Positions 3,004-57,304 of a stretch of DNA of 64,000 nucleotides are shown one piece after another (the stretch's first letter is position 1; each line of letters starts with the position of its first letter). The notes below the pieces were generated by a model that was not told where the DNA came from, searched no databases, and worked only from the letters and a program-made list of their open reading frames with translations. Position numbers and translations under genes: made by a program. Where the stretch lies: assembly GCA_964036045.1 (NCBI GenBank), contig OZ038378.1, positions 200,322,001 to 200,386,000 of the forward strand, read 5' to 3'. The DNA is from Eutreptiella sp. 'Long Island Sound 2002' (taxonomy: Eukaryota; Protista; Euglenida).

Positions 3004-3255
3004 GCCGGCGGCGGCAGGGGCGGATGCTCCGGGAGAGCGTTGGTGGGTTCAGCTGCTGGTGCAGCCACCGCCTTCGGTGTCGGGATTGGGGTGGTCCGTA
3101 GTGCCGCCGCCGCGGCCTTGGCACGGGCTAAGTCCTGTTGGCAGTTTTCCAGCGACTGCAACGTCTTCTCGGTGATGGTGGCGGAGGCCCAGCCCGAGGT
3201 ACTAAAATACATGATGATGAACAACGTCAGTACACTGACACTGCCCCATAGCACC
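3004..3255 (-). CDS. Internal exon of a probable type II membrane protein (TM helix, short coiled coil, Pro/Ala stalk)
   Basis: Acceptor TTTACAG at 3256 and donor GTAAGA at 3003; open frame VLWGSVSVLTLFIIMYFSTSGWASATITEKTLQSLENCQQDLARAKAAAAALRTT...PPLPPP. Neighbouring exons not firmly assigned (candidates ~2428-2519 and ~4790-4850). Confidence 0.6.
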
Positions 3256-3550
3256 CTGTAAAGGGATGTGAAGGGCTGTGGAGGGCTGCTGAGGGTTCTG
3301 GAGTTGGGTGTGCTCCAGCGGTCTACCCTTTCGAACGTCCCTTACACCTCTGTAACCCTGTCCAGATTCCCAGGGCCCTTTTAAATCCTCGACAATCCGC
3401 CACAACTCTGTACAATCCATTTACCCCTCAATCCGTTTTCCACCTTTCCAGCCTTGTGCCATCCTCTTCAACGCTGCAACACCCTTTCCGACTCTCCACA
3501 ACACTGTACAAAGCCTCCCCACCTCCCCACCCCATCTCTCTGTGCGTGCG

Positions 3551-3594
<44 letters not shown>

Positions 3595-5164
3595 CGCCCA
3601 TCCGACTCATGCCCTGTTCTTTCACTTCTGTTTTAATTGGACGCCTTTGGCCTGACAAGATTCGTTTAGCGAGCAGTGCTGTGCTCTGTATTGCCCGTTC
3701 GTCTCGCTGGGACATGTTCAGTTGGCCGCAGCCTGAAGGTCATGTACTCGTGAGCCTGGCGGAGGTCTTTTTCCTTGGGATGGCCTATGCCTTCCCCAAG
3801 ATATTCTGGGCCCAAACAACCACTTGGATGTGTGTGTGCGTGCATGCCACCACCCGCCACCCCCTTTCCACACACACCATTGACCACCGGGGTCCATGCA
3901 CACTTCTTGGGTTCCATGGTTTGCCTTCATGCGGGGATGTCAAGTCCCCCCCACCGACCGCCGGTTCAGCCCCTCTACAACACTGTCCAACTCTCTCCGG
4001 CCACCCGTGCTCCACAGCTCCCACCACGGCAACAGAGTGTGAATGTGTGTGTGTGTGTGTGTGTGTGTGTTTACAACCCCTCTTGTCAGTGCAATGTTCG
4101 CAGTATTGTCCCACTCATCCTGTCAAACTGAATTGCCATTCCTGTGAAAACCATGTTAGGCCATGGAAGGGGCTTGGCTGCTTTTTTCCGTAATGCACCT
4201 CCGCCAGTGCCGTAGGCACTAGGTGAATGTCTCTGTAAAACAACTCCGGTTCCATTCAAATAATTTCGCATTGTCTCGCTGGTGCCCTACCCTGGCACAT
4301 GTGGGACTTGGTGTTCTCTTTATACAGCGTGTGTATGGGTATGTGTGTGTGTGCATGTGTGCGTGTTTGTACAGGTTTACGTGTAGCGAAGACTCCACTT
4401 GTGGCACTGATGTGGGTGGTGGGATGACAGAGAGCACCGTCATGGCCACAGGTGAGTGTAATCCACTCAAAGAGGATTAGTGTGCGGACATAGAGCAAAG
4501 TTGCAACCTCAAACAGCAATGGATGCGAACACTTGCACCAAGAATACACCGTATCTTGGGCCACATGGCTCAAACTCCGATTCCGCGGCCACCTAAGACC
4601 CCGCTTTTTGTGGTTTCCATTTATGGTGTGATATATAGAACCAAATGGACGCCCAAACCCCCGTACAAGTACCCACCGGCCTGCGCCAAGCTGCAAGCTC
4701 CAGCCCATACATGCAGGTGCCAAAATGGGTCACCGGGGTCCACCAGAGGCAAAAAAACGCAATGATCGTCGACCACGTGGGATGCTTACGCAGATTCTGG
4801 GGCTTTTGGGGGCCTTTTGGGGGCGCTTCTCCAACATATTATGGAGATGGGGGAGTGTTTGCGGCACGCGCCACTTCTACGGCGTGTTTTCCCGGAGCGG
4901 CCTAGGCTTAGCCCCCTCCTAAAACGGCCCCTAAGGAGAGAAAACCCCTTGGTGGTAAGCACAGTTGCTTGGTCAGAATAGGTGGCCAAATCTCCGCGCC
5001 CCACGCGCGCGCCACATCAGGTGCTCCCCCATAGAGGGCACCGCATGACTTTGACACGGGGAAATCAAGACGCACAAGGAGTGTACCAACCGTTACCCAA
5101 AGGCACCTCCGGGCCTCCTTAGGGGGGGGGGGGTCCAGGGGAGGGGGGGAGGGGGTCCAGGGGG

Positions 5165-16174: not shown

Positions 16175-16684
16175 CGCTCCGCTGCGTCTGAGCGGCGTTG
16201 GCTGCCCGCGAGTTCGCCCTCAAGTCGCTGCGCGTCGGCCGTCAGGGCGGCGACGCGCTGCTGCAGCGCCTCGGCCTCAGCCGCCCGTGCCTTCAGCTCC
16301 TCCTTGACGCTCTTCTGCTCCTTCTCCCAATGTTTGGCCAACTGCGTCTGCAGGTGCAGCTCCTTCTCCAAATGCGCCGGGTCAGGGCCCCGCGGCGCAC
16401 TCTGGGCCCTGTTCGCTGCCAACTCGGCCTGCGCCTCCTCCAGCTCCCGCCTCAGGCCCTTTGCGGCGGCTGTATCGGCCTGGGCCTGGCCCCGTAGGGC
16501 ACTGACCTCCTCCTGTAGACTCCTGATGGACTCCACCAGCGCCTCGTCCTGCCCGCTCTCGGCCGCCAGCTGATTCATGAGGCGCGCGCGCTCCTCCCCC
16601 GCCGCCGCCAATTCGGCTTGAAGCCGCTCCACCTCCTCCCCCATCCCTCCGGCCTCCGCCTGGGCCACTTCCAGCTCCGCAATC
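16175..16684 (-). CDS. Coiled-coil protein exon 4
   Basis: Acceptor TCTCTCAG at 16685, donor GTACGC at 16174; 510 nt, phase 2/2; IAELEVAQAEAGGMGEEVERLQAEL...SQRRSDAAE. Confidence 0.88.
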
Positions 16685-17704
16685 CTGAGAGAGACCCCGG
16701 ACGCAAACGGGTCATGGACAAGTGAGCGGAAGAACGGAAAGAGAGATTGAGGCGGCGATGCAAACTGGAAGAGGGGAAGGCACGCTGCCGTCTTCACCTG
16801 CCCCCAACTGCCCCGCCCCTTCAACGACGGCACATGTAACCGACAGACACCGCTGCGAAGCGTTTCGCCGGCCCCCTCTGACCTGTGGTGGCTGCTGCTC
16901 AGCAGGAAGCAGGAGTCTCGGAGTCTGTGCACGCCCGGGATTGACACTGTTGGCGCGCGCGCGCGCGCGCACGCACGAAAAGCAGCCAGAGATGCATGGG
17001 CAGGGGCAGTGCGTCGGTTCCAAAGGCAGGAGCCGTGGTGCGGTATCGTCCCTAAGGTCTTGAGGATGTTGCCCCGTCTTCTCCTGTGATGTGCGCATCA
17101 CAGTGTCGGGCGAACATTGAAGTGGGAGAGGGAGAGGGCGAGGGAAATAGAGAGGCGGAGAGAGCGTGTGGGATGGACTTGCAACCAGCGTCCACCAGGT
17201 TTGCGACAGGATATCACTGAGTGGTACCTCTGCGTCTCACGGTCACAAAAATTTCTGTGGGCTAACCTGCTCAAACCCAGTGAGCGGGATGGCGGGCAGT
17301 GGCCGGACGACAAGGGGCGGCCCTCCCCCCTCACCGGAGGACAAGGTGGGTCTGAATGGCCCGCTCTACAGTGCAAAGGGAATGAGTGAAAGGAGTGGGA
17401 CGCCATGAGCCATACGTTCCTTGACCCCACCTCAGGCACCGGGGAAGGCCTTGCCATAGCCTAAAGCAGGGCTGAGAAGCGAAGCCCCTCTCCGGTGGCC
17501 ATGGCGCAGGTTTCGTCGGATTCTGCGACCTTTTGGTCTGGTATACTCGCCAATCTTTGTGGCCCATGCCACGGTCAAATTGGCACTGAGCCGCACAGTC
17601 TTCCCACCGGCGTCCCTTGGCTCACGAAACTCAGTCCCGCTCCCGGACACTCGTGGCATGTCCTACGTGGTTGGCATAAACTCCCGCCCCCAAAATGTAT
17701 ACCC

Positions 17705-28000: not shown

Positions 28001-28289
28001 GGATAGAGCTGAACCGCATGGACCCGCAAGAATGTTGACATATTTTAAAAAATCGGAGAACATGCGCACTTTTTCACAGTGAGTAGCGCTCAAGTAGCCG
28101 TGGTGGCCACCAGCAGGCAAGTGGCCGTGCAACTGGCTTGGCATCACCGAGTAGAGCGGCACAAGGCGCGAACACGCAGGCCAATCAAGAGCTGTGCGAG
28201 GGGGCATGTAGACGAAATACGGCTAACGGAACATTACGACTGTTAAGCCAATTAATGCCATAATGTTCCAGAAGATGCGAGACTTGTTC

Positions 28290-28960
28290 CAAAAGACATG
28301 ATACATCTACCGGAACTGTAAAACAATTTGCTAGACGTTGTGGAACACTCCATACTGTTCCAAAAGACGTAATACGTTTGTCGGAACAGTATGGCAAAAT
28401 GTTACATGCAACATATAGTTCCACTAGATGCACCATTTACTATCCACACAATGGTTTTTTATTGTTTTAAATTTTCTGCTTTCATTTCCTGAGCAACTTT
28501 GCTGAGATTTCATTTTGGACATCTTTAACGTCTTTATTCAACTGTCGTGTAGGGATACCATTTTTTTGTACTAGCTTTTGTATTCCATCTAAATCATTTC
28601 TTCTTCCTTCAAATACTTGCAACAAGTCTCCAAATATAGTTTCCATCCTTCGCTGTCATTTGGTAGACAACTGTTGAACTCTTTCGGACCACTTCTCTGT
28701 TCCAACGGTTAGTATCTTCAAATAGTTTCTAGTGCTCCCTCATTTGTTTAAAAAAAGATATCAGATTTTTCAATTCAGCCCAATCAATCTATGATTGCAA
28801 ATAGTTTTTATGACTATGTATCATCGATGTCTGACTCACTGTCTCCAAATGCCGTTTAAGTTCTCGACAATCAAGCAGAACTAGTTAGAAAATATTCTGC
28901 CAGAGTTCTTGCAGCTCTTGGGTTGTTGAATCAATCACATGAAGACACATACATATGTCA
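28290..28960 (-). pseudogene. Possibly decayed hAT-like transposase fragment
   Basis: AT-rich, multiple stops; IDWAELKNLISFFKQMREH resembles the hAT W..L..L..FL..F motif and RLANCFTVPV resembles the C-terminal dimerisation region. Similarity is weak. Confidence 0.3.
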
Positions 28961-29087
28961 AAACAACACACATTAGACATGTCCCTTGCACATGGTTATA
29001 CATAACATAACATATGATAACATAATATAACGTAGTGGGTGGGTCTGGCCTGGGGTTGGTTGGTAGAGCTGGATCCTACGTCTAACT

Positions 29088-29524
29088 TAAGGTTCGGAAT
29101 CGGTTTTACCAATTAATCGGATAATCGGATTAATTGGATTAATTGGGTCTAGTGTGACAAATAATCGGTAAAACTGATTATTTTGAAAACTGGTATAAAC
29201 CAATTAATCGGAGAAGTTATGTATGAAAAAGAAATATTTCGTTGATACCTCATGAAATGTTTCTTATCAAAAACCAAAGGATTTTGCAAAATCACATGAT
29301 TTGGGATAAAAGTCAAAGGTTTAGCCTGTCTTTCACCTCTATTTTCACATTTACTATCCCTTAGGTAAAAGTTCACAGCTTTTCGGCAATAATTGCATTA
29401 TGTAGACACAACAATCGAAAATAACCGATTATTTTTATGTCATATAATCGGAATAATTGGTTATTTTTACACAAATAATTGAAAACAATCGGTTATTTTT
29501 GCATGAAACCAATTCCGAACCTTA
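29088..29524. mobile_element. AT-rich hAT-type MITE, family E
   Basis: TIRs TAAGGTTCGGAATCGGTTT and AAACCAATTCCGAACCTTA (18/19); TSD GTCTAACT / CTCTAACT (7/8); many subterminal AATCGG/CCGATT motifs. Confidence 0.88.
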
Positions 29525-30535
29525 CTCTAACTTTTTGTCATACTGTTGTCCTAGACGCAGTGCATCTTTTGGTACAACTCTTAAGTCTTATGGAACAGTA
29601 TAAGCTGTTCTAAAAACAGCAGTCTTCTTGTTCCGCTAGATGTATTTTGTCTACCATCTCCATTAGAGCGATCGACCATACCCTAGTGGTTAACCATGTG
29701 TGCTCTAGGGAGGAGGACCTGGGTTCCAACTCCACTACCCCGAAACTTTTACCAAATGTTTTCGCTTCAGTTTGAGAATATTTGAGGAATGCCCCTTGAT
29801 TTGGATACCATACACAGTACATTACGTTGTTTTCCGAGGTACCAAGAGTGTAAAAAGTTTCTATGAACCGAGGAGAGTGTCATTAGCTGGTTTGAAGTAT
29901 TTACTAAGGCAATTTCATGGGATTTGAGCCTTTTTCCTTGGTCCTACTAGCTGTGCTTGATCAACTAGTACTCCAAGGGAGAGTAAGAAAAAGCCACTGC
30001 CACATCTTTTGTGCGGGACAAGCCCTATTCTTTACGAAGTATTAAACACTAACACTTAATCATTTTTTCCATCCTTTTGAAGCATGAAAGTACAATTTTC
30101 AAAGTAACTAGCGGAACAGCGGAGGTATCTTCCTTGATGGAGGTATTACCGAAATAATCTAGGCACTTCATGCCTTTTTCCTTCAAGGTTAAGCCTAGTG
30201 GTCTCCCACCTCAAGGCTTGTAATGAGACTGTTGGTACCTGGTCTTCCCGTACCTCAATCTCACTGAATCACCCAAGCGGAGCACAACGCTATTGATGAT
30301 CGGATTATTTCGGCAAAGTGAACGGAGTCGGATACTGAACTATTGTAGTTCAGAAAATATGGCTTTGCATGCCTAAACAAAAGAAATGATATTTTAAGCA
30401 CAAAGCACATGTGTTAAAGTGCACAGCAAACAATCCGTATAGTTACAGGCTTGCTCTATGCACTTACGCTTTACGACTCCATCTTATCCTACGATCTGGC
30501 GCTTCCGCGATTTCAGGTATACACCTGCAATCCGC

Positions 30536-32384
30536 TTTCAGATCTAATTCTGAAATTACAGATCTAATTCTGAAATTAGCGCATTCTGCACTCTGCTGTG
30601 CCAATCCCATTACACTCCCCTCCTAAAATACTTCATACTTCTCAGTGTGTGGCTCAAAAGCATGAAGTGTTTGATACAAAATTATATGAGGTTGGCACTG
30701 CAAACTTTTGGCGCACAAAGTGCTGCCAAGTGCACACCTACACAGATACTACAGTGCATTAAGAAATGAAACAAAAGTTGGAGTAAATATCTGCTTTAGC
30801 CTTGTTGTGTTGTACTGATGTGTAGTACCTCGTGCCTGGTGCACTGTGCAGCCTAAGGTAAAATGCTTTTTTGCATCCACCAGTCAGTGGTGGTATGTGG
30901 GACTCAGCAATGCCACTACCCACTAAAACCCTTAGGACGTGGCGCCCGGGGCTGCCATGAGCCAATGGCGAAGCCTGGAGGGGTAGGTCTTTAGCCTGGC
31001 ATAATATAGCTTTAATACTAAAATTAAGCTTCACCAAATGAGGCCTTGAGTGGCCACAGGCCTGGTGCTTTCAAAGAGTGCCCAATGTTTTTCCTAGGGG
31101 AAAACCCAAGAGAAAACCGTGCACAGTTTTACTCACTCACCCTGCTGCTTGTTTAGGTTTCCCCAACAACAAACAAGCCAAGGTCCACGGCTCAGCACAA
31201 AAAAGACAGACAATGTCTGCTGTGCTCCTTGTGTGCTCTATTCAGCTGGCGCGTATGCTGCCAAACAGGGACTTCCCAAGTGCTCGGCCAATACCAAGCA
31301 GCCTGGGTGTCAGCACCCTGTGCTCTCACAATATGAACAAAAAAAGAAGCAAGCCCATATATTAGCGCTACAAATGAAAGCGGTTGGTGTCGCCTGAACT
31401 TTCAAAAGCGACGTTAAACAGAAAGTCAATTTTTACATCCAGGCTAAATCTGAAGTGAATTTGCGCCCCAGAGCCTTGCTATGGCGCAATTGAAACACCA
31501 GGCTTATAGAAGCTTCCTTACGGCGCTCGCTAGCGCCACACTCGCCCACTGAGCCTCAGAAGAGACTCGCAGCACAATAGCGCTGAGGTCGTCGCACTCA
31601 GGCTGCAGGACCTCCAACAGCGCTCACACAGCACATTGTTGTCGCACTTGGTGAGCATCTCGCTTGCCGCACAGCAGAACAGCGCTGAGGCCTGTCATCC
31701 TGCTTGCAAGACCTCCAGTAGCGCTCGCACAACACGCTGCTGCCACACATGGCGAGCATCTCGTTGGTCGCATAGCACAAAAGCGCTTAGGCCTTGTCAT
31801 CCTGCTTGCAAGACCTCCAATAGCGCTCGCACAGCACGCTGCTGCCGCACTTGGCGGCCACCTCGTTTGCCGCGCGTGTTTGTGCGCTCCGGCGTAGCTA
31901 ATGAGCTTGGTGAGCTTGGCGAAGAGCTGAGCCGCTGTTCCTGCGCAGCAGTGGGCTTTTGCACGTTACGGCGCGCCGCAGTGTCACGCACTGCTGGCTG
32001 GCGTCGCGCATTGGTACCAGCAGCGTCCTCATCTGGAATCCTTTTGCCCTGCACACTGGCGCCGCTCTCCAAATGCTGCACACGGCCACAGAGCTGCTCC
32101 ATGCGTCGTTCCAAGCTTCGAAAGCGCTGCTCGCGGTGGTCAGCTGCAGGAGGCATGCACAGCTCCTTCGAGCAAGTGAACATACTGCGCGTATTGTGCA
32201 GACTCAACATCACGTCGTCCCCAGCCCTCCTCCAACTCCAAGCGATATAGTTCGTTCTGGAACTCCCTTAACCGCTGTACGGCGTCTTCGCCCTCACGAA
32301 AAAAATGTAATGGGATTGGCACAGCAGAGTGCAAAATGCGCTAATTTCAGAATTAGATCTGTAATTTCAGAATTAGATCTGAAA
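30536..32384. repeat. 79-bp inverted repeat pair (30536-30614 and 32306-32384) enclosing ~1.7 kb
   Basis: 30536-30614 is the reverse complement of 32306-32384 with 1 mismatch. Confidence 0.9.
31570..31860 (+). repeat. ~102-bp minisatellite, about 3 diverged units, decayed 34-codon repeat
   Basis: GACCTCCA at ~31609, ~31710 and ~31812; one frame gives repeated (L/S)CLQDLQxRSHxTLLxHxxSIS with stops. Confidence 0.75.
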
Positions 32385-32424
32385 TTAGCGCATTCTGCAC
32401 TCTGCTGTGCCAATCCCATTACAT
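32305..32424. repeat. 120-bp near-perfect palindrome (47-bp arms)
   Basis: ATGTAATGGGATTGGCACAGCAGAGTGCAAAATGCGCTAATTTCAGA ... TCTGAAATTAGCGCATTCTGCACTCTGCTGTGCCAATCCCATTACAT, 1 mismatch. Confidence 0.92.
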
Positions 32425-32795
32425 GCTTAGATACTCAAAAGGTTCATCTACTTAATGTGGTTCTATTTTGTAACTAATTTTGAATTCAGTTGCCTAGCCA
32501 AGTTGGCCGAGCCATATCCTGTGTTTGGCCCAACCTACATGCCCCAGATTCCTAACGTACTCCATTGCATTCCAAACTGTGCACATGAAATGCTTATCAA
32601 TGTCTGTTGGGCCAGACTGTTGTCAGTTTTCACATTAAAACCATTTGCTTTGTTTATAAAAGACTAATGCTTTGTATTTAAGCCTGCTTTGTCCATGTGC
32701 AGCCCCTCTTTCCTACTTATGCTTTGATTTGGAAACATACTTTCCTAACTTGATTTGATCTGGTGCTTTTTGGTGCCTATCATTGCTCTACTACT

Positions 32796-33593
32796 AGTAA
32801 GAAAAAGTGCTTTTCCATTGCTTTGGGACATACTCTAGTTGTATTAGAGATGCACTGAGCATCCATGCATTTTTATCTTAGTATTGTTCCAGCCAAAAGT
32901 GGTGAGAACACATTTTGACCTATGGAACCAAACACCCAATCAGGATATGGAGTGGACCCCTTAATCCCCTTTCAATCAGAAGTAAAACATCTTTTCCTGA
33001 GTTGACTGAGCACTGACATACCTAAGGTAGAGCCTATGAATTTATCTATGTTTTTCCATGAATACTTATCTGCCCTAGTGGTATGCACCATAGGGGGTTA
33101 GGCACCTCTTTTTGAGAGGTCCTGGGTTCAATTCCTGGTCAGCCTAACTAAGTAGGAAGATCCCATGTGACATGGCAGTGACCTCATCGCCACATACCAT
33201 GCCACCTCAGCACATATGGGACCCAAAACAAAGAGTGCACATCTCCTAAGATGGCACTATGGAGAGAGAGTGATCCTGAGGCAGTTTTCTAACTCTTTTC
33301 CCAAAACATTTCAGCTATCTCTGTGAATATGCATTCATTTGTATCCTGAGTTGCAGTTTCTGTGAATATCTAATCATCTTTCACTGTTTACACTGCAGCC
33401 CTTCATGCTTTGATCCTGAATTACCTTCTCCTTGCATACTATTGGCTTGGGCTATCCTGGATTGAGTTGGCTTTACTGTATTTCAACAAACAAAAGCTTT
33501 TCATCATCCAAAACCAGCAGCAGGACACCCTACAGCAACAACAAGCAGCAGGAGAAGCAAAAACACAGTGCTGAAAACACTATAAACTTTTCT
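32796..33593 (+). repeat. 5' LTR (798 bp), AGTAAG...TTTTCT
   Basis: Differs from the 3' LTR by 2 substitutions and one AG microsatellite unit. Confidence 0.97.
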
Positions 33594-33605
33594 GGTAGCA
33601 AGAGG
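33593..33605 (+). promoter_or_regulatory. Primer-binding site (TGGTAGCAAGAGG), overlapping the LTR end by 1 nt
   Basis: TGG immediately at the LTR end; resembles the complement of the initiator tRNA-Met 3' end (TGGTAGCAGAGG) with one extra A. Cognate tRNA not verified. Confidence 0.7.
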
Positions 33606-33691
33606 CAGCCTGTCTCTGTGCACCGGCAGCGACCCCGCGCCGTACAACCAGTGCTCCGAGCAGGCAAACATAAGCAGAAGGGTGGATTAAG

Positions 33692-36193
33692 ATGGATCCA
33701 GGAAGAGTGGACGCCGATGTGAACACAGCGCCAGCGCCTGAGGCACCGGCAAGGCCGGCGCCTGACGCTGTACCTTCGGTGGAGCCCTTACATGGGCCAA
33801 TGGATACGGCGGAGGACTCCCTGGATGGCCTCCAGACGGCCTTCGGGGCCCTGTCGGTCAAAGAAGTGGTCTCTCAACCTCAGCCTGTGAAGAGGAAGAG
33901 AGGGAACGAGAGCGAGAAGGATGCTGGAGAAGGAGCAGACGAAGGAGAGGAGCAAGGGCAAGACCCGACGGATGTCCCTACCTTCGAAGGCGCACCAAGC
34001 GCTTCTGGCCTCCATGCATCACCCTCTCCCATAACCACCACACTCCCAGCCGCCGCTACATCCACTTCCACAACCAACCCGCCTATGGCAGAGGGCACAG
34101 GCTTTACTGGCATGCCTCACTACCCCGCCTATGGCATGGGCCCACCTACCACTGCGCTCCTTGAGGCAACTACTGCCAGTGAGCCGGTGGCTTCCAGCTC
34201 TGCGCCGCGTTGGTATGCGGCTGACCATCCCCATCCACTCCACGCCACTGGAACCTACATGGAAGTTCCTGGGTATGCTCCTGGGTGTGCACCTGGGTAT
34301 GCACCCCTGAGTGGGTTGAGGAGAGGACCAGAGTCTCTGGGAGGCAGGAGTAGAGGATCGGGAAGATCCTCCAACAGGTCCCTGACGCGGTCGGAGATCA
34401 ATGAGGTGCTCCGAGGAGCCACTTCGCAAATCGTGAGCGACCTCACGCAAGAGATCAGGGAGAAACTGCAGCCCCTGATGATCCCGTCCCATGCGTCACC
34501 TACGACGGTGGGAATGTCACCCCACCGAGTACAGGCTAACCACCTGGCAGCAGGGTTGACAAATACCCTGGGGAGCCTGAGGAGCCGACCGATGCCGACT
34601 CCTGCAGCAGTACCGAGAAGTCCATTCGTCCCGAGGACAGCCCAGCCGCCCTACAGCCACGTGACGAACTCGACGAGGGCCGAGCTGGACCAGCTGGGGC
34701 TGACAGCCCTAAGGGCTATGGTGGACGTGGAGCCTTATGGCTCCAGTGATCTAGGCGGAGACCCCTCCGATGATGGGCCGCCGTCGATGACTTCTTCTTC
34801 GCCATCGGATGACGAAGACCCTGAGGACCCCGAGGACCCCAAGGGTAAGAAGAAGAAGAAGAAGAAGAAGAAGACCCGACGCCCTGAAGGACGCCGAGCT
34901 CAGGAGGCGAAGGCTATTGCCACCTCCAAGATAGTGGTGAACCTGCCTGAGTTCACAGGCAAGGACCTCAGCGAGTTCGCTGAGAACTTTGGCCGGTTCC
35001 TACGACTGACCGGCCAAACCCACGCGAGTGGGCGAGTGAAGTGCGACCTGCTCCTGCAGTGCTGCAAGACGAAGTACCTGGAGAAGCAGGTCAGGCAGAT
35101 CGTCACTAACTCCGCCACCTTTGCCGACGTGTTGGTTGCCCTGGAGAGGCAGTACCCAATCTACGAGACAGACCTCTCCATCAGGGCCGAGATCCAGAAC
35201 CTGCCCGTCCTGCCCAACAACCCCAAACCCGGCAGGGTCTCCGAGCTGTTGGCGGACCTGGACCACTGGGCTGGACGGCTGACGCCCGGTTCCTACAGCA
35301 GCGACGACCTGCTGTTTTGGTTGTGCTCCAAGCTCCCCCGAGAGCTATGGGACGAGTGCCGTTTGACGGCTGAGCGCAAGGCTAGATCCCTCCGCTACGA
35401 GGATCTTTGCGTGCTGCTCCTGGAGATGGCGCTGGAGAAGGAGAGCGACCAACACCTGAACCACTACCGTCCTGGTGGTGGAGGTTCTGGAGGCAAAGGG
35501 TACCAAGGGTCCCGACCTGGGCAGGGGACTACCCCCAAACACGCCCACGCCCGCCTAATGGAGAACGTGAAGGAGCTATTCTGGTGTGATGCCAGAGATG
35601 AGCAGGGCCACCTGCAGCACGCCTCTGACTGCGAGCAGCGAGACTGCTTCGTCGTCCAGGGGAAGCAGCAGGAGAAGATCACCGGCGCCAAAGTGAAGCT
35701 GCCGGATCATTACCGCTGCACCATCACGTGTGCATTCTGCGGTAAGCGGAAACACTACGAGGACGAGTGCTACCATAAGCAACGCCTATCGGCGAAGCTT
35801 AAGGGGGAAGATCCTGGCAAAAGCTCAGGCAAAGGTGGAGGCAAGGCCAAAGGCAACGACTCCGGCAAGGGCAAGTCGAAAGGACGTGGTCAAGGTGGTC
35901 AAGACAAGGGTCAAGGTGGACGAGGAGGAGGCGCTAACCGCCAGAACGACCACAAGAACAAGGACAAGAACGGAGGTAACCCCAACCCTAATCCAGGGGG
36001 GAACTCCGAGCCCTCTGGAGGGCAGTCTGGACCTACCACACGCTCACAGACGCAGGCCCAGCAAGAACAAGGAGCCAAGCGTGAGCATGAAGGTGGAGAT
36101 GACGGCAACGCCAAGAAGAGAAGCCGTTTCATGAGGATGGCCCGCAAATTGCGGAACAAGGGGTTCGAGGTGACCTGTCCCGCGGAATTCTGA
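33692..36193 (+). CDS. gag: Gag (833 aa)
   Basis: Long ORF after the PBS; capsid-like region (LPEFTGKDLSEFAENFGRFL); CX2CX4HX4C knuckle CAFCGKRKHYEDEC at 35729-35770; poly-Lys stretch; Gly/Lys-rich tail. Confidence 0.93.
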   Translation: MDPGRVDADVNTAPAPEAPARPAPDAVPSVEPLHGPMDTAEDSLDGLQTAFGALSVKEVVSQPQPVKRKRGNESEKDAGEGADEGEEQGQDPTDVPTFEGAPSASGLHASPSPITTTLPAAATSTSTTNPPMAEGTGFTGMPHYPAYGMGPPTTALLEATTASEPVASSSAPRWYAADHPHPLHATGTYMEVPGYAPGCAPGYAPLSGLRRGPESLGGRSRGSGRSSNRSLTRSEINEVLRGATSQIVSDLTQEIREKLQPLMIPSHASPTTVGMSPHRVQANHLAAGLTNTLGSLRSRPMPTPAAVPRSPFVPRTAQPPYSHVTNSTRAELDQLGLTALRAMVDVEPYGSSDLGGDPSDDGPPSMTSSSPSDDEDPEDPEDPKGKKKKKKKKKTRRPEGRRAQEAKAIATSKIVVNLPEFTGKDLSEFAENFGRFLRLTGQTHASGRVKCDLLLQCCKTKYLEKQVRQIVTNSATFADVLVALERQYPIYETDLSIRAEIQNLPVLPNNPKPGRVSELLADLDHWAGRLTPGSYSSDDLLFWLCSKLPRELWDECRLTAERKARSLRYEDLCVLLLEMALEKESDQHLNHYRPGGGGSGGKGYQGSRPGQGTTPKHAHARLMENVKELFWCDARDEQGHLQHASDCEQRDCFVVQGKQQEKITGAKVKLPDHYRCTITCAFCGKRKHYEDECYHKQRLSAKLKGEDPGKSSGKGGGKAKGNDSGKGKSKGRGQGGQDKGQGGRGGGANRQNDHKNKDKNGGNPNPNPGGNSEPSGGQSGPTTRSQTQAQQEQGAKREHEGGDDGNAKKRSRFMRMARKLRNKGFEVTCPAEF

Positions 36194-39100
36194 CGGGGAC
36201 GCTCTGGTGGCACCCAAGACCTGGTGTTTTGGGTACGTATCCAACTAGGGGGACGCGAATACCTGGGGGTACTGGATACTGGCGCCACAATAGCTATAGT
36301 GGCCAAGAAAATTTTACCTTGTGGGAGCCTGAAGAACACCATGACCACCGCCGCTATACGCATGGGGGATGGACATGTGGTGCACAGCTGCGGGGACTGT
36401 GAAGTGGAGGTACCTATGGGCTCTCGAACTATCGCCCATCGGTTCTATGTGATGGACACTGAGGCCTTCGACTTTGTACTGGGTACTGACTTCTTCGTGC
36501 AGCACTCCCAGATACAATCCCTGACGCTGCAAGCGCCCTACCTCCTGTACGTGGACCACGGCAGTGGCAGAGAGTCTGTGCCACTGGAGCAGTCGGAACA
36601 TACCTCGAGTTACCTGAGACTATCGAAGGAGGAGCCCTCGAACATGATGGCGGCCTCCAAAATTGAGGACTATCAACTATTGGGGGAAGTCCTAGACCAA
36701 GGTCTGAAGGAGTTGGGTTACTCTCGAGAAGACCTAAGTGTGGAGCTGTTCGCCAGCGACAAGCAGCATGTACTGGACCTATACTGCAGCAAGGGGAAGA
36801 ACTGCAGCTACAAATTTTACTGGCCCTCTTTCGGGATGGCCTACGGGAACCCCAGATTCAGTGAACTGGGGAAGGTGCTGACCAAGGTGGCCTTGGAACG
36901 TTCCCGTATGGTCCTGTGTTCCCCCGATCGGGGAGCCCATGGGGGCAACGAGTACTGGCGAACCCTCCTTGACAAGCTGACTATCAGCTCTGTGCGGTTA
37001 CCTGATGAGGCCATCTACGTGCCTCTGGGACGCAAGACGCCTATTGGGAAGCCCGGATGGGGGAGTATGCTCAGCGTGGTGGACGGAAGTCTTACCACCA
37101 TTCCCTGGGAGGACCTGGACCCGACTATGGTCCAGGCTATACAACGTGAAAGCGATGGACTCGCCTTGGGTGACTTGAAGGATCGTCTACGACCTCAAGA
37201 TGCTGTTGAAACTACACCCGGAGGAGATGAGTACGTCGTGACTGACACCAACGCCCCCAACTCTCCCTGTCATGTACCTGTTCCTGATGGAGTCTCTGAG
37301 TGTGGTCTATCTGAGCTACCTAGCTCTATCCACTCAGACGACGAAACTGAGCACGACGCCTTCTTCGTGCAGACCGCGGTGGAGGAAGTGGAGAACGCCG
37401 AGTACGTCGCCCCACTAAAACCCCTACTCTCCATGAGGGTGGAAGACCCCGTGGATGAGGAGCTGGACCCTCGATCCAGGCTCAGGGAGTATGTGGATTC
37501 CAAGAGGAAGTTGGTGGCGAAAAAGCTATGCTACGCGAAGCCTACCCGCAGCTCCTGGCCACTGAAGCAAGGACGTATGGGAGACCTATCCCAACTGAAG
37601 GAGGACCTCGAACAGAAGATCACCACCTGGCAAAGGGAGGTAGATCTCAAGCTCATGAAGAGCGTATGGGGTGCCCATGTGAGGACCCCAGAAGAGGACG
37701 ACCTCTCGGAGGAATGTGTATGTGAATCCCCTCGAGCGTGCCTATGTTGCCATCGTCCACCGGAGATGGTCGAGCAAGACCTTCTATATGCCTACCAAGG
37801 GCTGAAGGATGCTACCGCGGGCGAAGAGTCGGTGGAGGACCACCTCCCGACGTCTATTCAGGGGGCAAGCAACTTACACTCCGACGAGGACTTGGAGGAC
37901 AAGATCAAGATATTGGACCCGCGGGTACAGAAGCTGATAAGGACCTATCTGGAGTTGTTCGGAGAACTACCCCCTCCAGCGTCATGTGACAAACTGGTAC
38001 AGATGGACCTCAAGCTGAAACCCGAGTTCGTGGGTCATAAGATTCGGAGGAGACCCTATCCAGCTCCTAAAGAGCAGGCCGACGAGATTGAGCGACAGAT
38101 ACAAGAGTGTATTGACGCTGGCCTAGTCCTGGAGTACAAGGACGGGGACTACCCCCTACACTGCAGCCCCTGTTTCCTGGTGGCTAAACCTGGGTCTACA
38201 GCCAAACGGCTGGTAGTGGACTATGGAGAGCTGAACAAGAAGACGCTGAACCACTCAGGGTCCATTCCCAATATGGAGTCTACCCTGGAGAAGATAGCCT
38301 CCTGTCGCTACAAGACCAAGATGGACAAGCGAAGTGGATTCTGGCAAGTGGACCTGACGCCCAACGCGCAGGAACTACTGGCCTTCATCACCCCTCAGGG
38401 GAGGGTATTCAAGTGGAAGGTCATGCCATTCGGCGTGGCTAACGCACCCGCTCTGTTCCAAGAGCTGATGAACAAGATCTTGTCCATCCTACGAAGGAGA
38501 CCTAAGGTGCAGGAGCTCATATCCCGTGGGGCCCAGATGGAGGCTCACATCGACGATGTATGCCTCGGGACCAATACCCAGGAGGATCACCTAATCCTCT
38601 TGGGTGAGTTCTTTGCGGTCTGCCAGGAGAACCACACACGACTCAAGCTGGAGAAGTGTGAGTTCATGCAGGAGACCATGCAGTATTTGGGGTTTGACGT
38701 TGGCTATGGGTGGTGGACCCCAGCGGCCTCTAAGGCCAAACCCCTGATGGATGCCAAGGTACGACACGAAGACCCCAAGAAAGGACTTCATGATGTACGC
38801 AGTTTCATTGGGGCGTGCAACTTCTATCGCCGCCACATCAAAAACTTCACCTACACCAGCGCTGTACTGACTGACTTGATCAAGAAGAGTACTACTTGGC
38901 GCTGGGGCCCACAAGAGCAACAAGCGTTTGACGAGCTCAAAGACAAGGTAGCCAACGCTAAGTGCTTGGGCGTGCCTAGGGCACAAGGGGAGATTATCCT
39001 GGTGACCGACGCCAGCAATGTGGGCGGTGGTGGAACGTTGTTCCAATGGCAAGCACTAGAGAAGGAGGAGTTCGACTCGGCCATTTCCCAATGGGGGACG

Positions 39101-41122
39101 GAAGGTCTCAACCGAGATGGAACCCTCAAGCACAGCTACCCTGACGACAAGTGGGTCCTAGTACCTCTGGGCCACTGGAACTGGAAGTGGAACCAGGCCA
39201 GGGGGAACTACTCCACCTATGAGCAGGAACTGCTCGCGGGTATGCTGGTGCTATCCTCACAAGCATGACTGTTGGGGAGTAACCCTGTGGTCTGGCTATG
39301 CGACCAAGAACCGGTTCGCAGTTTCCAGAAGGGCCCCCCACCTGAGAAGGCCAAGCTACGTCGCTGGTGGACCTACCTCAGTCAACTACGGCTGACGGTA
39401 CACCATATCCAGGGAGTGAAGAACGAGTGTGCCGACTACATCAGCCGCAACAACTTCGACGCCCTGATTGGTGCCCGGTCTGAAGCGCTGGCTAAGGAGG
39501 CGTTCAGCCGTATGGACGTACATCTGGACCTGAACATGACCATGATACGCCCCCTGGATGGACTCCAACAATCGGAGTACCTACAAGAGTTTGGGGATAT
39601 CTACCGGCGCCTGGAGAAACGCCTTGAACCCCTCCTGGTCAACCAAGACCAGTGGAAGCGGGACAAGAGCTACCTCTGGCACGAGGACCGCATCGTGGTA
39701 CCTAGTGACCGAGTCCCAGCGCTGCTGAAGTCGACCCATGAGTCCAGTGGTCATGTGGGTGCTGACCGTACCCTGAGGCTGTTCAAGCAGTGGTTCCACA
39801 CTACGTGGACTGACGACCAACTGCGGAAGACACTCCAGCCTATCTTGGACAAGTGCCCGTGCAGGTCCTGTAAACCAGGGGATATCAGGGACAGAGGTCT
39901 CTACTCGACCCTGCCCATCCCACACTGTGCCAACAGTGTTCTATACGTGGACTACACGGAGATGCCGAAGTTCGGGGGCTATGACTTCGCCCTCGTGGTA
40001 ACCTGTGGGTTGACCAGGTTTACCAGGGTGTTCCCATGTACCAAGCACATTACCGGGGAGGAGACTATCAAGATACTCCTGGAGGAGTGGTTTTGTGTCT
40101 ATGGGGCGCCCAAGGAGATCAACTCCGATGAGGACGTACGAGTACGCTCAGATACTGGCTGGTACAAGAGGGTCCTGAGATCCCTCAATGTCCAGGTGTC
40201 TACGGGGATTCCCTACTCTCACACGAGCAACCCCCTATGCGAGCGACAGATTCGTGTCCTGAAGGAGAACGTCAGGATATGGTGCAAAACTGAACGCACC
40301 AGAGACTGGGTGAGACTACTCCCCGTCATATCCTTGATGATGAACTCCCAAGAGAGTTCAGCTACTGGCTACTCGCCACATGAGCTATTCATGGGGCGCC
40401 CGGCGTGGTTCCTACATGCCCCCTATCCAGAGGACACCCATTCTTCTGTGGGTGAATGGGTCCAAGAGCAACAAGCGAAGGTGGACAAGGCCAAGGCTAT
40501 GCTCCAGAGAGTGAGGGAGCGTCAGTGGAACAAGAAGAACAAGCACCGTGTACCGGCCACCTACCAAGAGGGGGACTGGGTGCTGGTGCACCACAGTCGA
40601 CTACCCGCCTGGCCACGCTCTACCAGCGATGACCCATACTTCGGGCCGTACAAGATCCTATCTGTGGATGGACACCGTATCACCGTGCGGTGTTCTCCCC
40701 GTCTAGGGGGGACCCTGGTGTGCGCTGCTCAACACGTGAAGCGCTACCATAATCCTGAAGACCTCTGTGGGGAGGAGTGGGAACTGAACGACGAGGAAAT
40801 CGCCGCTCTGGACCTACAAGGGGCTGCCAGCCCTATGGAAGTTGAAGGTGAACTCCCCGACATGAACGCCGAGGAGATGGCTAAGGAGGGCTTCTACCTG
40901 GTGAAGTCTGTCCTACGCCACCGCTATCGCCAGGGTTGGCGCTTCCTCACCCTCTGGGAAGGGTTTGGAGTCGAAGAGGCCACTTGGGAGCCCTTCTCTG
41001 CATTTGTTCTACCTGAGGGACGCCTAAACTCAGTTCTGGTTGACTACTTGTCCCAGAACAACCTTGGTGAGTTGCTGAGGCTCGCTGAGACGCTTGCCTC
41101 CAAGACTAAAGCTAGGGACTGA
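36194..41122 (+). CDS. pol: Pol polyprotein: protease, MTase-like domain, spacer, RT, RNase H, integrase, chromodomain; one in-frame TGA at 39266-39268
   Basis: LDTGAT (36272); RT KRLVVDYGELN, KMDKRSGFWQ, MPFG, HIDD (38546); RH VTDAS and YSTYEQELLA; INT H..GH/CxxxxC, D-D-E (YVDY, NSDE, LCER) and GPY; chromodomain FYLVKSVLRHR...FLTLWEGF...ATWEP. Confidence 0.95.
36660..37110 (+). CDS. Dam/DIRS-like DNA N6-adenine methyltransferase-like domain within pol
   Basis: VELFAS (36740-36757), FYW, MAYGNPRF (NPRF 36848-36859), LGKVLTKV, RMVLCSPDRG and EYWRTLL follow the order and spacing of the DIRS-type MT pattern DLFAS..W..YxxPP(F/Y)..VL.K..ILxxPxW..W..L. Confidence 0.75.
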
Positions 41123-43350
41123 ACCTTACCCTTACCTGCCAAAGCGTATGTGTGAGTGTGCTAGTCCTAAGGTCCTGAGAGCAAGCCGCAGAAGTGGTGT
41201 CCTAATTATACCCAAGTCTGCGCCCTTGCTAAACCTGGAGGGTTGGCTTATTGATGCCACGGGGTACGCCCCGGGTCTCCCCTCCCCTATGCGCCCAATT
41301 TCTGTGCTGGCGCAAAACCTTGGGGGAATACCCAGAGTGTTAATCCAGGTATTGTTTTCCCTACCTATCTGTCTACTACAGGGAGGGGTGGCCAAAAGCT
41401 ATGAAGGCATGCAAAACGCCTGTTTGCTATGTGGCCAAAACACTGACCTAACCACTGTCACAGCCCACCAACCCAGCTAAAATTGCAGGAAAAGGGTGGG
41501 ACAGTGACACGCCCCCTACAGGTCCTACACACCCTACAGTGGCACCATCCTGGTGGGCGAGCACTGGGCAACTGGCTCTAGCCCCCACTCAGGACTACCA
41601 CTCCTACACGCACACTCTACTTGGCGTTGCGAAGAGGAAGGTCTCATGGGTCCTAGCGACCCACCTGTGAAATGACAAGAGAACACAGCGCTGCTAAGCA
41701 ACTGTGGCCTCACAGGGGAAGCCACAACGCGTTTCCCCTGCAAGGCCTTGGAGGGAAGGAGTGCTCTCGTGTGCAAGGCGCAGATGTCGATGGAGTCGGA
41801 CTCCCTGCTCTGCCACAGGCGGAGCGGAGTTACTTGTTTGTGTGATCTGCGCCCTTGTTTAGCAGGGCATAAAAAAAGCTGCTGCACCACTCACCCTACC
41901 TGCCCACCTGTAAAACAAAGGCATATGAAAGGGCGTTTGCGGCTGAGGAACCAAGGCACACTCCAGGTATTATACCCTTCTCAGTGTACCCTATAATACG
42001 CTGTCCGCAAACACGCTGCATGGAGCAGCTACCCTTATCAAGCAAACAAGCGTTAAGGGACTCCTCAGGTTCTCTTAAAGAACGTACCGAGGAGCCCCTG
42101 GGTAGCCTAAACAAGGTTTACCGTGCGCACTTCGCGTGGCCTACCCTTTAATGCGTGTGTGCATGCGCGACTATGCAATCACGTTGGGCAAACCTGCCCA
42201 TCTCCGCAACAATCTTGACTCCACCAGGGGGTGGCCCCGCCTGGGCGTACCTACCTTACCTACCGCTGGGAAGTGAAGCAAGGTGAGAGTACAAAAGGGG
42301 CGCACGCGAAGAACGTTGCTATGCACTTGTGTGTATGTCTAATCACCCTGATCTGACCGCTAATCATCTGCAATCTTTCTAATCAATCCCTCTACCGCGT
42401 CCTATCGTGGTTATCGTTGTTAACGCTGCTACACGACTCGTTCACGGAGACACGAGACGAGCAATGTGTATGCGGCATGCAAGACAGGCATACCTGTAGT
42501 TTATACCTGATTCATTGAAGTCTCTTCGATTGATTCTCGAATTCTTGAATTTTTGAAGCTTCTATTAGTGTGGGTGGAATCTGTATGTTTGTTTATTAAT
42601 GTGTGTCTCGTCATTTTCAAGACTACGTGATACATACGTTTCGCTAGGAGCCGCTCCTGCGCGCCGCCATTTTATGCGTATGAATTTCTGGATTTAAAAA
42701 ATCCAGAGATGACTATAATTTCTATAAAAATGTGCTTCCGATGCACAATTGGATTCTGCTCAGGTGTGTCGTTTCAGAAAAATTCTACGCCGTCATTTGA
42801 CGGATTTTGGTGTCGTCGCTTCGTTTTTGCGTGGATTCGTCCATATTCCTCCCATTCCTGCCTCTGCAGATACCCACGCGCAGCCTCGCTGAGTAGGCCG
42901 TGTTCGGGCCGAAACGCAGGTGCCTGGAGAGACTGAGCAGAACCAAGACCCCACCAAGGGGCAAATTTAATTTTCTTTCGACTCCCTTCGCCCTAAGACA
43001 GGTCACAGGTCGCCAGCAGGTTTACGAGAACCCATGCGAGTGTGTATAATGTGTCTTGCGTTTGGGTTGTGTCGACGCTGCGTCTTGGAGGGAGGGATGC
43101 ATATGCACATGTTTGGCATGCTCCCAATCTAACCCAACCAAGCCACAGGAGCCCCGGCAGCGCCAAGAGCGCTGAGTCTTCTGTAGGAAACTGTACAATC
43201 AGAGCAGCAAAAGGACGCCAGCCATGGTGAGCGCCCATTTTTCAGTGTGAGGGAGACTGTAGGTATTTTAAAGTAGGTGTGGAAACCAAGGAAAGGCCAA
43301 GAAAAATTCCCTTTTTCCTAAAATGCGACAGTGGTGGCCACCACAGCACA

Positions 43351-43357
43351 AGGGGGG
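43351..43357 (+). promoter_or_regulatory. Polypurine tract
   Basis: AAGGGGGG (43350-43357) directly precedes the 3' LTR start AGTAAG. Confidence 0.85.
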
Positions 43358-44157
43358 AGTAAGAAAAAGTGCTTTTCCATTGCTTTGGGACATACTCTAG
43401 TTGTATTAGAGATGCACTGAGCATCCATGCATTTTTATCTTAGTATTGGTCCAGCCAAAAGTGGTGAGAACACATTTTGACCTATGGAACCAAACACCCA
43501 ATCAGGATATGGAGTGGACCCCTTAATCCCCTTTCAATCAGAAGTAAAACATCTTTTCCTGAGTTGACTGAGCACTGACATACCTAAGGTAGAGCCTATG
43601 AATTTATCTATGTTTTTCCATGAATACTTATCTGCCCTAGTGGTATGCACCATAGGGGGTTAGGCACCTCTTTTTGAGAGGTCCTGGGTTCAATTCCTGG
43701 TCAGCCTAACTAAGTAGGAAGATCCCATGTGACATGGCAGTGACCTCATCGCCACATACCATGCCACCTCAGCACATATGGGACCCAAAACAAAGAGTGC
43801 ACATCTCCTAAGATGGCACTATGGAGAGAGAGAGTGATCCTGAGGCGGTTTTCTAACTCTTTTCCCAAAACATTTCAGCTATCTCTGTGAATATGCATTC
43901 ATTTGTATCCTGAGTTGCAGTTTCTGTGAATATCTAATCATCTTTCACTGTTTACACTGCAGCCCTTCATGCTTTGATCCTGAATTACCTTCTCCTTGCA
44001 TACTATTGGCTTGGGCTATCCTGGATTGAGTTGGCTTTACTGTATTTCAACAAACAAAAGCTTTTCATCATCCAAAACCAGCAGCAGGACACCCTACAGC
44101 AACAACAAGCAGCAGGAGAAGCAAAAACACAGTGCTGAAAACACTATAAACTTTTCT
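43358..44157 (+). repeat. 3' LTR (800 bp)
   Basis: Direct repeat of 32796-33593, followed by TSD CTACT. Confidence 0.97.
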
Positions 44158-44329
44158 CTACTTGGTGAATCATCATTTGTTTTGGGAAAAAACATCGTGG
44201 GTTTCTTCTGCATAAACAACCAAAGAACGTATTGTGGTAACCAGCATATCTTTCTTTTCGCCCTCAAAAACATATATTTTGTGAATTTGTACTTTGTGTG
44301 TGCCAAAAACCCACCGGGGAGGGTTTCTG

Positions 44330-56353: not shown

Positions 56354-57304
56354 TCAGAGGGCGCCGCAGTGCACCATCTCCCGCCGGAGCAGCTCGAGCA
56401 GCCGCTCCTCCGCCCCGCAGCTGCTGCCGAATGCAGGCGGTGGGGGCACTGGGGCCTCTGTGGGGGAGGAGGGGGGCGGCACCGGGGGTGACGAGAGCCA
56501 TTCCTCCGGGATCAGGACCACACCCTCGGCGAGATCGGGGAAGGGAGAGCCGTCGTTGCGCTGAGTGCCGGACTGATTGAGGGTCATGTGGTTGGGGAGC
56601 GCCGAGAGGGTGTCAAGGGTGGCGGTGACGAGACGGTGGCGCTTTTGCACGGTGTTGGGGATTTTGAAGTTCTCGCAGATCCAGTCCACAACTTTGCCCA
56701 CAGACCACCGCCGCGGCATAAACATTTTCTGGTGCTTGATCCCGAAACATCGCGGGAAATATGCGGCGAACTCCACGCGGTCATCCACATGGACGTTCTT
56801 GGGGCCCACGTTCGAAGTCCCCGAGCCTGTGTACAGTGATTGCAGCAACCCATGAAGCGCTCTCCTCGTCTTTGGGTCGGGAACCTTGTCCTTCTCCACG
56901 GGCACGGGGCAGGAGTGCTCTTCAGGGAGCCGGTGCTTCACACAAAAGTGCTGCTTGCACATGTAACAGCTCAGTCTGATAGGGTGTGACTCTTTGCAGC
57001 CCTTCACTGCACATGGGCGGCTGTTGGGGACCATGGCCGAATGCGCGCAGCCTCCGGCGATGTGGGCCTCTATCGCCGCGTTGCTGTCCTGCCCGGGCTT
57101 CAGGGGCACAGGCGTAGAGCACAGTGGGCAGATCGGGATGCTTCTGTCCACGGCGTTTGCACACTCATGCCTCGAACAGAGACGATGTTCTTCGCAAAAT
57201 TTCTTCGAACACTTGTTGCATGTGAAGATCATGTAATCTTCGGTTGGTTGGTGGCAACCTTCCGCTTCACACCGGCCGGCTCCGTTGTTGAATTGCGCCT
57301 CCAT
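56354..57304 (-). CDS. AN1-type zinc finger protein (ZFAND1/ZFAND2/Cuz1-like), 316 aa from ATG 57304, intronless
   Basis: Two AN1 fingers (CEAEGC..FTCNKCSKKFCEEHR..HEC; CAVKGC..CYMCKQHFCVKHRLPEEHSC), CPLC..VP..HI..C motif, C-terminal UBL-like region with WSVGKVVD. Confidence 0.93.
   Translation of the reverse strand: MEAQFNNGAGRCEAEGCHQPTEDYMIFTCNKCSKKFCEEHRLCSRHECANAVDRSIPICPLCSTPVPLKPGQDSNAAIEAHIAGGCAHSAMVPNSRPCAVKGCKESHPIRLSCYMCKQHFCVKHRLPEEHSCPVPVEKDKVPDPKTRRALHGLLQSLYTGSGTSNVGPKNVHVDDRVEFAAYFPRCFGIKHQKMFMPRRWSVGKVVDWICENFKIPNTVQKRHRLVTATLDTLSALPNHMTLNQSGTQRNDGSPFPDLAEGVVLIPEEWLSSPPVPPPSSPTEAPVPPPPAFGSSCGAEERLLELLRREMVHCGAL

Follow-up and report, generated by a model that had tools for sequence, protein, structure and literature searches.

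A stretch of 64,000 nucleotides (hereafter the window) from the euglenid Eutreptiella sp. 'Long Island Sound 2002' (contig OZ038378.1 of assembly GCA_964036045.1, positions 200,322,001 to 200,386,000 of the forward strand) harbours a Ty3/Gypsy-type long terminal repeat (LTR) element of 11,362 bp, located at 32796-44157 on the + strand. Between the protease (PR) and the reverse transcriptase (RT) in its pol gene, this element carries a domain of about 155 aa which, based on its sequence relatives and its predicted fold, descends from the phage-Dam-like methyltransferase (MT) domain of eukaryotic retrotransposons (the DIRS MT or 'DAM-TE' lineage). Where DAM domains have a catalytic Asn-Pro-Pro (NPP) triplet followed by an aromatic residue, the motif here is N-P-R-F. 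Judging from the aligned copies, NPRF characterises the whole family as well as its sister subfamilies and is not a lesion of one copy, and the domain appears to have remained under purifying selection since the change of the triplet. Our preferred reading, to which we assign a probability of about 0.6, is that the domain is kept for a probably non-canonical or non-catalytic role and is unlikely to act as a canonical adenine-N6 methyltransferase. The new part is the clade itself, which on sequence grounds is a distinct variant of the DAM-carrying LTR retrotransposons (DAM-LTRs) with an NPR triplet, invisible to Pfam, hugely amplified and constrained.

The peptide is read in one + strand reading frame, in the same open reading frame (ORF) as the protease and the RT. 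This agrees with an earlier note on the window, made by a model from the letters alone, which had placed a Dam/DIRS-type adenine-methyltransferase-like domain between the PR and RT of a Ty3/Gypsy element. The bounds proposed there (36660-37110) bracket the domain, with base 36660 itself falling outside the coding frame, and the structured core of our model spans 36671-37135. The motifs start at 36740 (VELFAS), 36848 (NPRF), 36920 (PD-x-G) and 36950 (EYWRTLL). No Pfam match was found in the ~550 residues that separate the protease from the RT, whether the domain, the whole PR-RT interval or the stretch following the domain was searched (E<=10), and a word-indexed protein search with pol region 130-310 returned close copies only (70-98% identity). 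When 1.84 billion representatives were searched exhaustively with phmmer, 373 relatives of the window domain were obtained at E<=0.001, 214 of them at E<=1e-10. These include relatives bearing NPPF/NPPW and PDWG motifs, which are linked to the domain at E values between 1e-15 and 1e-40, and canonical NPPF or NPPW together with PDWG is found in relatives at 34-47% identity. The comparison with Pfam Dam (PF05869) which the earlier note had proposed was negative for the window domain itself and positive for 16 of the 42 aligned relatives (E<=0.01, best E 1.2e-6), with no competing family. Five also have a retroviral-type protease upstream.

An AlphaFold2 model of the domain, built from the alignment of relatives, has a pLDDT of 88.8 and a pTM of 0.84. 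The E-L-F-A strand and the N-P-R-F loop are placed after strands, as are motifs I and IV of class-I methyltransferases. The model was searched with Foldseek against predicted viral structures (BFVD) and the PDB. BFVD yielded 18 matches at E<=0.001. Phage proteins annotated as 'DNA N-6-adenine-methyltransferase' head this list, with the top matches at E 6e-7 to 1e-5, probability 1.00 and a TM-score normalised to the query (TMq) of 0.63-0.68. This structural check, also suggested beforehand, thus points to a methyltransferase fold of the phage type, predicted with confidence. The best PDB matches are all adenine-N6 methyltransferases (KsgA/DIMT1, PCIF1/CAPAM and Erm), at a weak E of 5e-3 and above, while sequence searches of the PDB (phmmer with the domain, hmmsearch with the 42-sequence profile) yielded noise only. 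Transitive sequence homology and, as an independent line, the fold thus both support the Dam-like reading. Phage Dam proteins (PF05869) provide the best structural matches and share the motif order, i.e. an acidic-L-F-A strand, about 30 aa, an N-P-x-aromatic loop after a strand and then a helix. They differ from the window domain in that identity is only 14-18%, there is no direct profile match and the triplet is NPP and not NPR; moreover, phage Dam is a free enzyme, whereas the window domain lies within a polyprotein.

Motifs were compared ORF by ORF on the sequences as they stand, with 79 to 82 close copies counted per column. Among 79 close family copies, the motif columns hold N in 77, P in 78, R in 74 and F in 74. 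The arginine, listed in the earlier note as a caveat for this copy or family, is hence family-wide, and it extends to the sister subfamilies. The subfamily represented by locus L003, with 76% nucleotide identity over pol, has NPRF as well, so the change from NPP to NPR is older than the split between the window copy and L003. NPP occurs in none of the 62 representatives with at least 60% identity to the window domain, while NPP(F/W/L) occurs in 33 of the 49 below 60% identity. The window copy retains 25 of the 30 columns that are at least 80% conserved in the NPP group. Clade-wide differences from that group are seen in 4 columns, two of which lie in the catalytic loop; the residue preceding the motif-IV triplet is altered throughout the clade, and the aromatic residue of motif IV is retained. 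With regard to the PD-x-G motif, it had been suspected that the PDRG of the window is a mutated PDWG. The window residue is indeed in the minority, the majority residue being present in 66 of 81 copies, and it is shared by 5 of these copies.

Selection was estimated from the pair formed by the window copy and L003. In the DAM core, the proportion of nonsynonymous differences (pN) is 0.177 and that of synonymous differences (pS) is 0.582, which corresponds to a pN/pS of 0.31 (bootstrap 95% confidence interval (CI) 0.21-0.43), compared to 0.22 for PR and 0.31 for the linker following the domain. The Nei-Gojobori (NG86) ratios of nonsynonymous to synonymous substitution rates (dN/dS) for the same pair are 0.21 for DAM, 0.09 for PR and 0.07 for RT, with synonymous sites being saturated. 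The reading frame is retained across 24% nucleotide divergence. Because the two LTRs of L003 are 96.1% identical to each other, decay after insertion accounts for only a small share of the divergence between the two elements. For this pair, the conservation that the earlier note had wanted to see checked is thus indicated. The linker of about 335 residues between the domain and the RT, for which AlphaFold2 gives a pLDDT of 57 and a pTM of 0.23, lacks a family match and is predicted to be mostly disordered with lone helices, yet it is constrained (pN/pS 0.31). A short acidic patch, 'AF-x-V-x-T-x-x-E-E', recurs in distant relatives.

The NPR family is present in thousands of copies in one assembly. 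The five loci L001 to L005, which comprise all close and several distant relatives that were fetched, originate from a single ENA assembly (ERZ25074135) with contigs of up to several Mb. The 90% protein clusters of the family include ones of 6186, 1049, 281 and 218 member sequences, and at least 1475 called proteins match the DAM profile in a profile-based word-indexed search, none of them distant. In two copies of the family, the LTRs are 99.5-99.6% identical. The same genome also houses DAM-LTR families with NPP, whose protein clusters have 1-6 members (P0123, P0196 and P0190). The PR-DAM arrangement also recurs in unrelated samples, such as a 7.9-kb contig (L006) of JGI metagenome 3300002026, which contains a complete element with gag, PR-DAM(NPPF), RT, RNase H (RH), integrase (IN) and a chromodomain, the latter as a weak Chromo match after rve. 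In L006, gag and pol are in different frames, as opposed to the in-frame TGA of the window's family. Locus L002 is visibly decayed, being cut into many short ORFs. The L003 element is flanked by 1.3-kb stretches (3013-4317 and 16305-17613) that are 83% alike and each contain EF-Tu-like ORF pieces; this element is inserted into or beside a duplicated host segment.

The features of the window element are as follows:

32791-32795, + strand: target-site duplication, 5' copy (CTACT); the same 5 bases stand directly outside both LTRs.
32796-33593, + strand: 5' LTR, 798 bp, from blastn against the 3' LTR.
33593-33610, + strand: sequence resembling a primer-binding site, abutting the 5' LTR and beginning TGGTAGCA; direct reading.
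33692-36193, + strand: gag, 833 aa, an unbroken ORF that ends in TGA in frame with pol.
36194-41122, + strand: pol, with PR, DAM-like domain, linker, RT, RNase H, IN and chromodomain, from ORFs and Pfam.
36224-36508, + strand: aspartic protease domain with DTGA motif, pol residues 1-95, from Pfam.
36671-37135, + strand: DAM-like (phage Dam / DIRS MT type) methyltransferase-fold domain with motif-IV triplet NPR, as predicted from phmmer relatives, AlphaFold2 and Foldseek.
37136-38140, + strand: long linker between the DAM-like domain and the RT, containing an acidic stretch and predicted by AlphaFold2 to be largely disordered or to form lone helices.
38183-38698, + strand: reverse transcriptase, Pfam RVT_1 at E 2e-28, residues 654-825 of pol.
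38903-39247, + strand: RNase H, Pfam RT_RNaseH_2 at E 2e-13 and RT_RNaseH at E 6e-3.
39698-40219, + strand: integrase with H2C2 zinc finger and DDE core, Pfam rve at E 1.2e-7 and Integrase_H2C2 at E 2.3e-4.
40892-41050, + strand: probable C-terminal chromodomain, Pfam Chromo at E 7e-3 and 16.7 bits, under the gathering score of 25.1; pattern recognised by eye.
41123-43357, + strand: 3' untranslated region (UTR) without a long ORF, ending in a polypurine tract at 43343-43357.
43358-44157, + strand: 3' LTR, 800 bp, from blastn against the 5' LTR.
44158-44162, + strand: target-site duplication, 3' copy (CTACT), matching the 5' copy.

The element thus has direct LTRs, a target duplication, a primer-binding-site-like sequence and a polypurine tract beside the LTRs, and the order PR-RT-RNase H-IN, as in Ty3/Gypsy elements. 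The LTR pair is 99.5% identical, with 2 mismatches and one 2-nt gap (blastn, 798 versus 800 bp), and the polypurine run before the 3' LTR ends in G6. A CCHC zinc knuckle is located within gag at 35729-35770; gag has no Pfam match. The protease matches gag-asp_proteas, Asp_protease_2 and RVP of Pfam at E 3.5e-4 to 4e-3, all under the gathering scores, and the chromodomain stretch shows, by eye, an aromatic-cage-type Y/W/W pattern. The window element is a recent insertion of a Ty3/Gypsy-type LTR retrotransposon with a probable chromodomain and, given its DAM-like domain, a DAM-LTR. The copy is young but not fully intact: of the 'young intact element' described earlier, the youth stands, and gag is whole, but pol is interrupted once, by a single premature in-frame stop with zero frameshifts. 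In a sister full-length copy that is 97.9% identical (L001, 1962-13358), the RT through the IN lie in a single ORF. Given the premature stop in pol and a residue shared by few copies in one conserved aromatic column of the DAM-like domain, the window copy is probably non-functional.

No match to a DNA methyltransferase of the DNMT type was found in gag and pol using Pfam, and the 2.2-kb interval from pol to the 3' LTR contains neither an ORF of more than 128 aa nor a DNMT. About 550 bp of the 3' UTR (41611-42166) is 78% identical to the corresponding region (13675-14239 of L005) in another DAM-LTR family. The RT of that family has only 69% identity, and the shared stretch may be a conserved non-coding module or a decayed common ORF.

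According to a preprint of May 2026 (bioRxiv 10.64898/2026.05.21.726589), about 10,000 eukaryotic DAM proteins exist, mostly in retrotransposons, and the first DAM domains in non-DIRS LTR elements are claimed there. Five DAM-LTR lineages are distinguished, including a Chlorophyta DAM-chromovirus clade and a chromodomain-bearing Euglena group, and nearly all DAMs are noted to keep the NPP triplet. The DAM-LTRs are enriched for N6-methyladenine (6mA) and expression in two ichthyosporeans, and for 6mA also in E. gracilis. No 6mA was detected in dam-deficient E. coli expressing DAM-TE domains, even canonical ones. The authors propose that DAM marks reverse-transcription intermediates, after which the host AMT1 maintains 6mA at new insertions. 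The novelty that the earlier note attributed to a PR-MT-RT Gypsy element is thus lost: this preprint already describes DAM-LTRs, chromodomain-bearing ones among them, as well as the concept of a 'writer plus reader', and nothing is overturned by the basic architecture seen here. The window family shares with the published DAM-LTRs a Ty3/Gypsy-like LTR organisation, a Dam-like domain within pol, in many cases a chromodomain, and the proposed logic of an epigenetic module carried by a retrotransposon. It differs in having NPR and not NPP and in going undetected by the Pfam Dam model. Since the screen of the preprint required a Pfam DAM match at E<=1e-5 and the window domain lacks one, the NPR clade would fail it.

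Other known systems are further removed. The EpiLTR elements defined in the preprint combine DAM, DNMT and a chromodomain; this assignment was rejected, as no DNMT is present in gag, pol or the interval between pol and the 3' LTR. In DIRS1-like elements, an MT domain of unknown function is found in the order RT-RH-MT (PMC3266345). These likewise have a Dam-like domain in the pol of a retroelement, but consist of RT, RH, MT and a tyrosine recombinase with inverted or split repeats and no target duplication, whereas the window element consists of PR, MT, RT, RH and a DDE integrase with LTRs and a 5-bp target duplication. A DIRS element was therefore rejected on the basis of the DDE integrase (rve), the direct LTRs, the 5-bp duplication and the MT upstream of the RT. 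Cytosine-methyltransferase retrotransposons include the streptophyte Gypsy-DNMT3 and the dinoflagellate SymbioDIRS-DNMT3 and SymbioLINE-DNMT (cited in bioRxiv 10.64898/2026.05.21.726589). There too, a retroelement has captured a DNA-methylation module, but one of the C5-cytosine enzyme family and in another position; the window element has none of these.

The in-frame TGA at the end of gag sits at the homologous place in subfamily L003, and because it is conserved in two subfamilies, read-through is the likely Gag-Pol strategy. The DAM-like domain would be translated within the Gag-Pol polyprotein via read-through of this UGA and would be packaged in the particle alongside the RT and nucleic acids. 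The (D/N/S)PP(Y/F/W) loop of amino-methyltransferases keeps the target amino group in place, and its aromatic residue stacks on the base. From the clade-wide Pro-to-Arg change and the second, adjacent change, it may be argued that canonical catalysis is altered or lost, which would make 6mA writing less likely than the earlier note assumed. If so, the job of the domain would need its fold more than its chemistry. Candidate roles are binding of the replication intermediate or of S-adenosylmethionine (SAM), or engaging the host 6mA machinery at new insertions, and the chromodomain would guide integration alongside it. METTL14 is a non-catalytic methyltransferase-fold partner in which EPPL replaces DPPW. 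The window domain may be comparable in that a methyltransferase fold is kept under selection after loss of the canonical motif IV; this is an analogy only.

Several points weigh against the preferred reading of a conserved domain with a probably non-canonical or non-catalytic role. That NPR cripples catalysis is argued from general knowledge of motif IV, and the arginine may be tolerated or may shift specificity. Many of the relatives are ORF fragments of decayed copies, so the motif state of a single sequence is noisy. The window domain has no direct match to Pfam Dam even at E<=10, and the best relative scores 28.0 bits against a gathering score of 28.1, with none reaching the cut-off; membership in the Dam family is for this reason transitive and structural. 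In addition, selection was measured on one subfamily pair, at saturated synonymous sites. An active enzyme along the lines of the preprint's model, i.e. a DNA (or RNA:DNA hybrid) adenine-N6 methyltransferase working despite NPR, which would place 6mA on the cDNA for a host AMT1-type maintenance enzyme to hold new insertions in permissive chromatin, with the chromodomain as reader, is considered unlikely. It would fit with the N, first P and aromatic F of motif IV and the 25 of 30 conserved columns being kept, with the purifying selection on the domain and with the family being the most prolific DAM-LTR of its genome and recently active. However, the second proline of the triplet is replaced and the preceding residue changed clade-wide, NPP is found in almost all DAMs and canonical DAM-TE domains gave no 6mA gain in E. 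coli (bioRxiv 10.64898/2026.05.21.726589).

Methylation of RNA adenines (N6-methyladenosine, m6A, or its 2'-O-methylated form, m6Am) in the element's own transcript or genomic RNA is quite improbable. The nearest solved structures, KsgA/DIMT1, PCIF1/CAPAM and Erm, are RNA adenine-N6 methyltransferases, one relative has a weak Pfam PCIF1_WW match (E 2.8e-3) and PCIF1-like proteins of giant viruses are among the BFVD matches. Yet the far stronger BFVD matches are phage DNA Dam enzymes, and as no solved PF05869 member is reachable by sequence in the PDB, the RNA methyltransferases may merely be the nearest solved folds; the objection raised by NPR holds here as well. A once-active DAM relic that drifts neutrally as a decaying passenger with no present role is less probable still. 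The non-canonical triplet, the further degraded motifs in copies of sister subfamilies (KPRL, NLRV and NPYF) and the minority residue of the window copy at a conserved column could be taken that way, but the degraded motifs stem from visibly decayed copies such as L002. A neutral relic was rejected because of purifying selection (a pN/pS of 0.31, CI 0.21-0.43, between two NPRF subfamilies, similar to PR), a frame kept over 24% nucleotide divergence and the retention of 25 of the 30 conserved columns. Least probable of all, with a likelihood close to nil, is an insert that is unrelated to methyltransferases and whose motif order is a chance resemblance. Direct sequence searches of Pfam and the PDB gave no match for the window domain, but a significant chain leads from it to its relatives (E 1e-15 to 1e-40) and from these to Pfam Dam (16 of 42, down to 1.2e-6), and phage Dam structures are independently matched by the model (E about 1e-6, probability 1.00). 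The relatives, their Pfam Dam matches and the Foldseek result together rule out a chance match of motifs.

LTR retrotransposons with a DAM domain entered the literature only in 2026, and the sole evidence tying them to 6mA is correlative. The NPR clade offers a natural contrast for whether the DAM module acts by adenine methylation or otherwise, because thousands of copies arose with a changed triplet and the domain, as far as the comparison of subfamilies indicates, is still under purifying selection. As NPR and NPP families share one genome, this contrast is addressable by descriptive data. Screens based on Pfam thresholds undercount DAM-LTR elements. A wider proposal is put forward more tentatively, at somewhat less than even odds: the most successful LTR family of this genome would bear a Dam-derived domain that lost canonical catalysis long ago (NPP to NPR) and was kept by selection. 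In that case, the benefit of DAM could be non-catalytic, for example by recruiting or mimicking the host 6mA system or by binding the replication intermediate, and the published census of DAM-TEs, which is based on hidden Markov models, would miss such 'pseudo-DAM' clades.

Within the 64-kb window, no further copies of the element and no other DAM or RT genes were found, and Rfam and tRNA scans of the window were both empty. Just upstream of the element, two 79-nt copies (30536-30614 and 32345-32423) are 87% identical and 1.8 kb apart, and between them, at 31592-31873, three repeats are spaced by about 100 nt. These may represent another small repeat element or a satellite. The GC content has a trough of 0.39 at 28001-30000, with the rest of the window at 0.47-0.63. 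An intronless host gene is located at 56357-57304 on the - strand and encodes a ZFAND1-like protein with two AN1 zinc fingers, a C2H2 finger and a ubiquitin-like domain (UBL). By its homologues, this one gene points to a host that is probably a euglenid different from Euglena gracilis. Its only two named homologues are a transcript of Euglena gracilis (44% identity) and a protein of Entosiphon sulcatum (38%).

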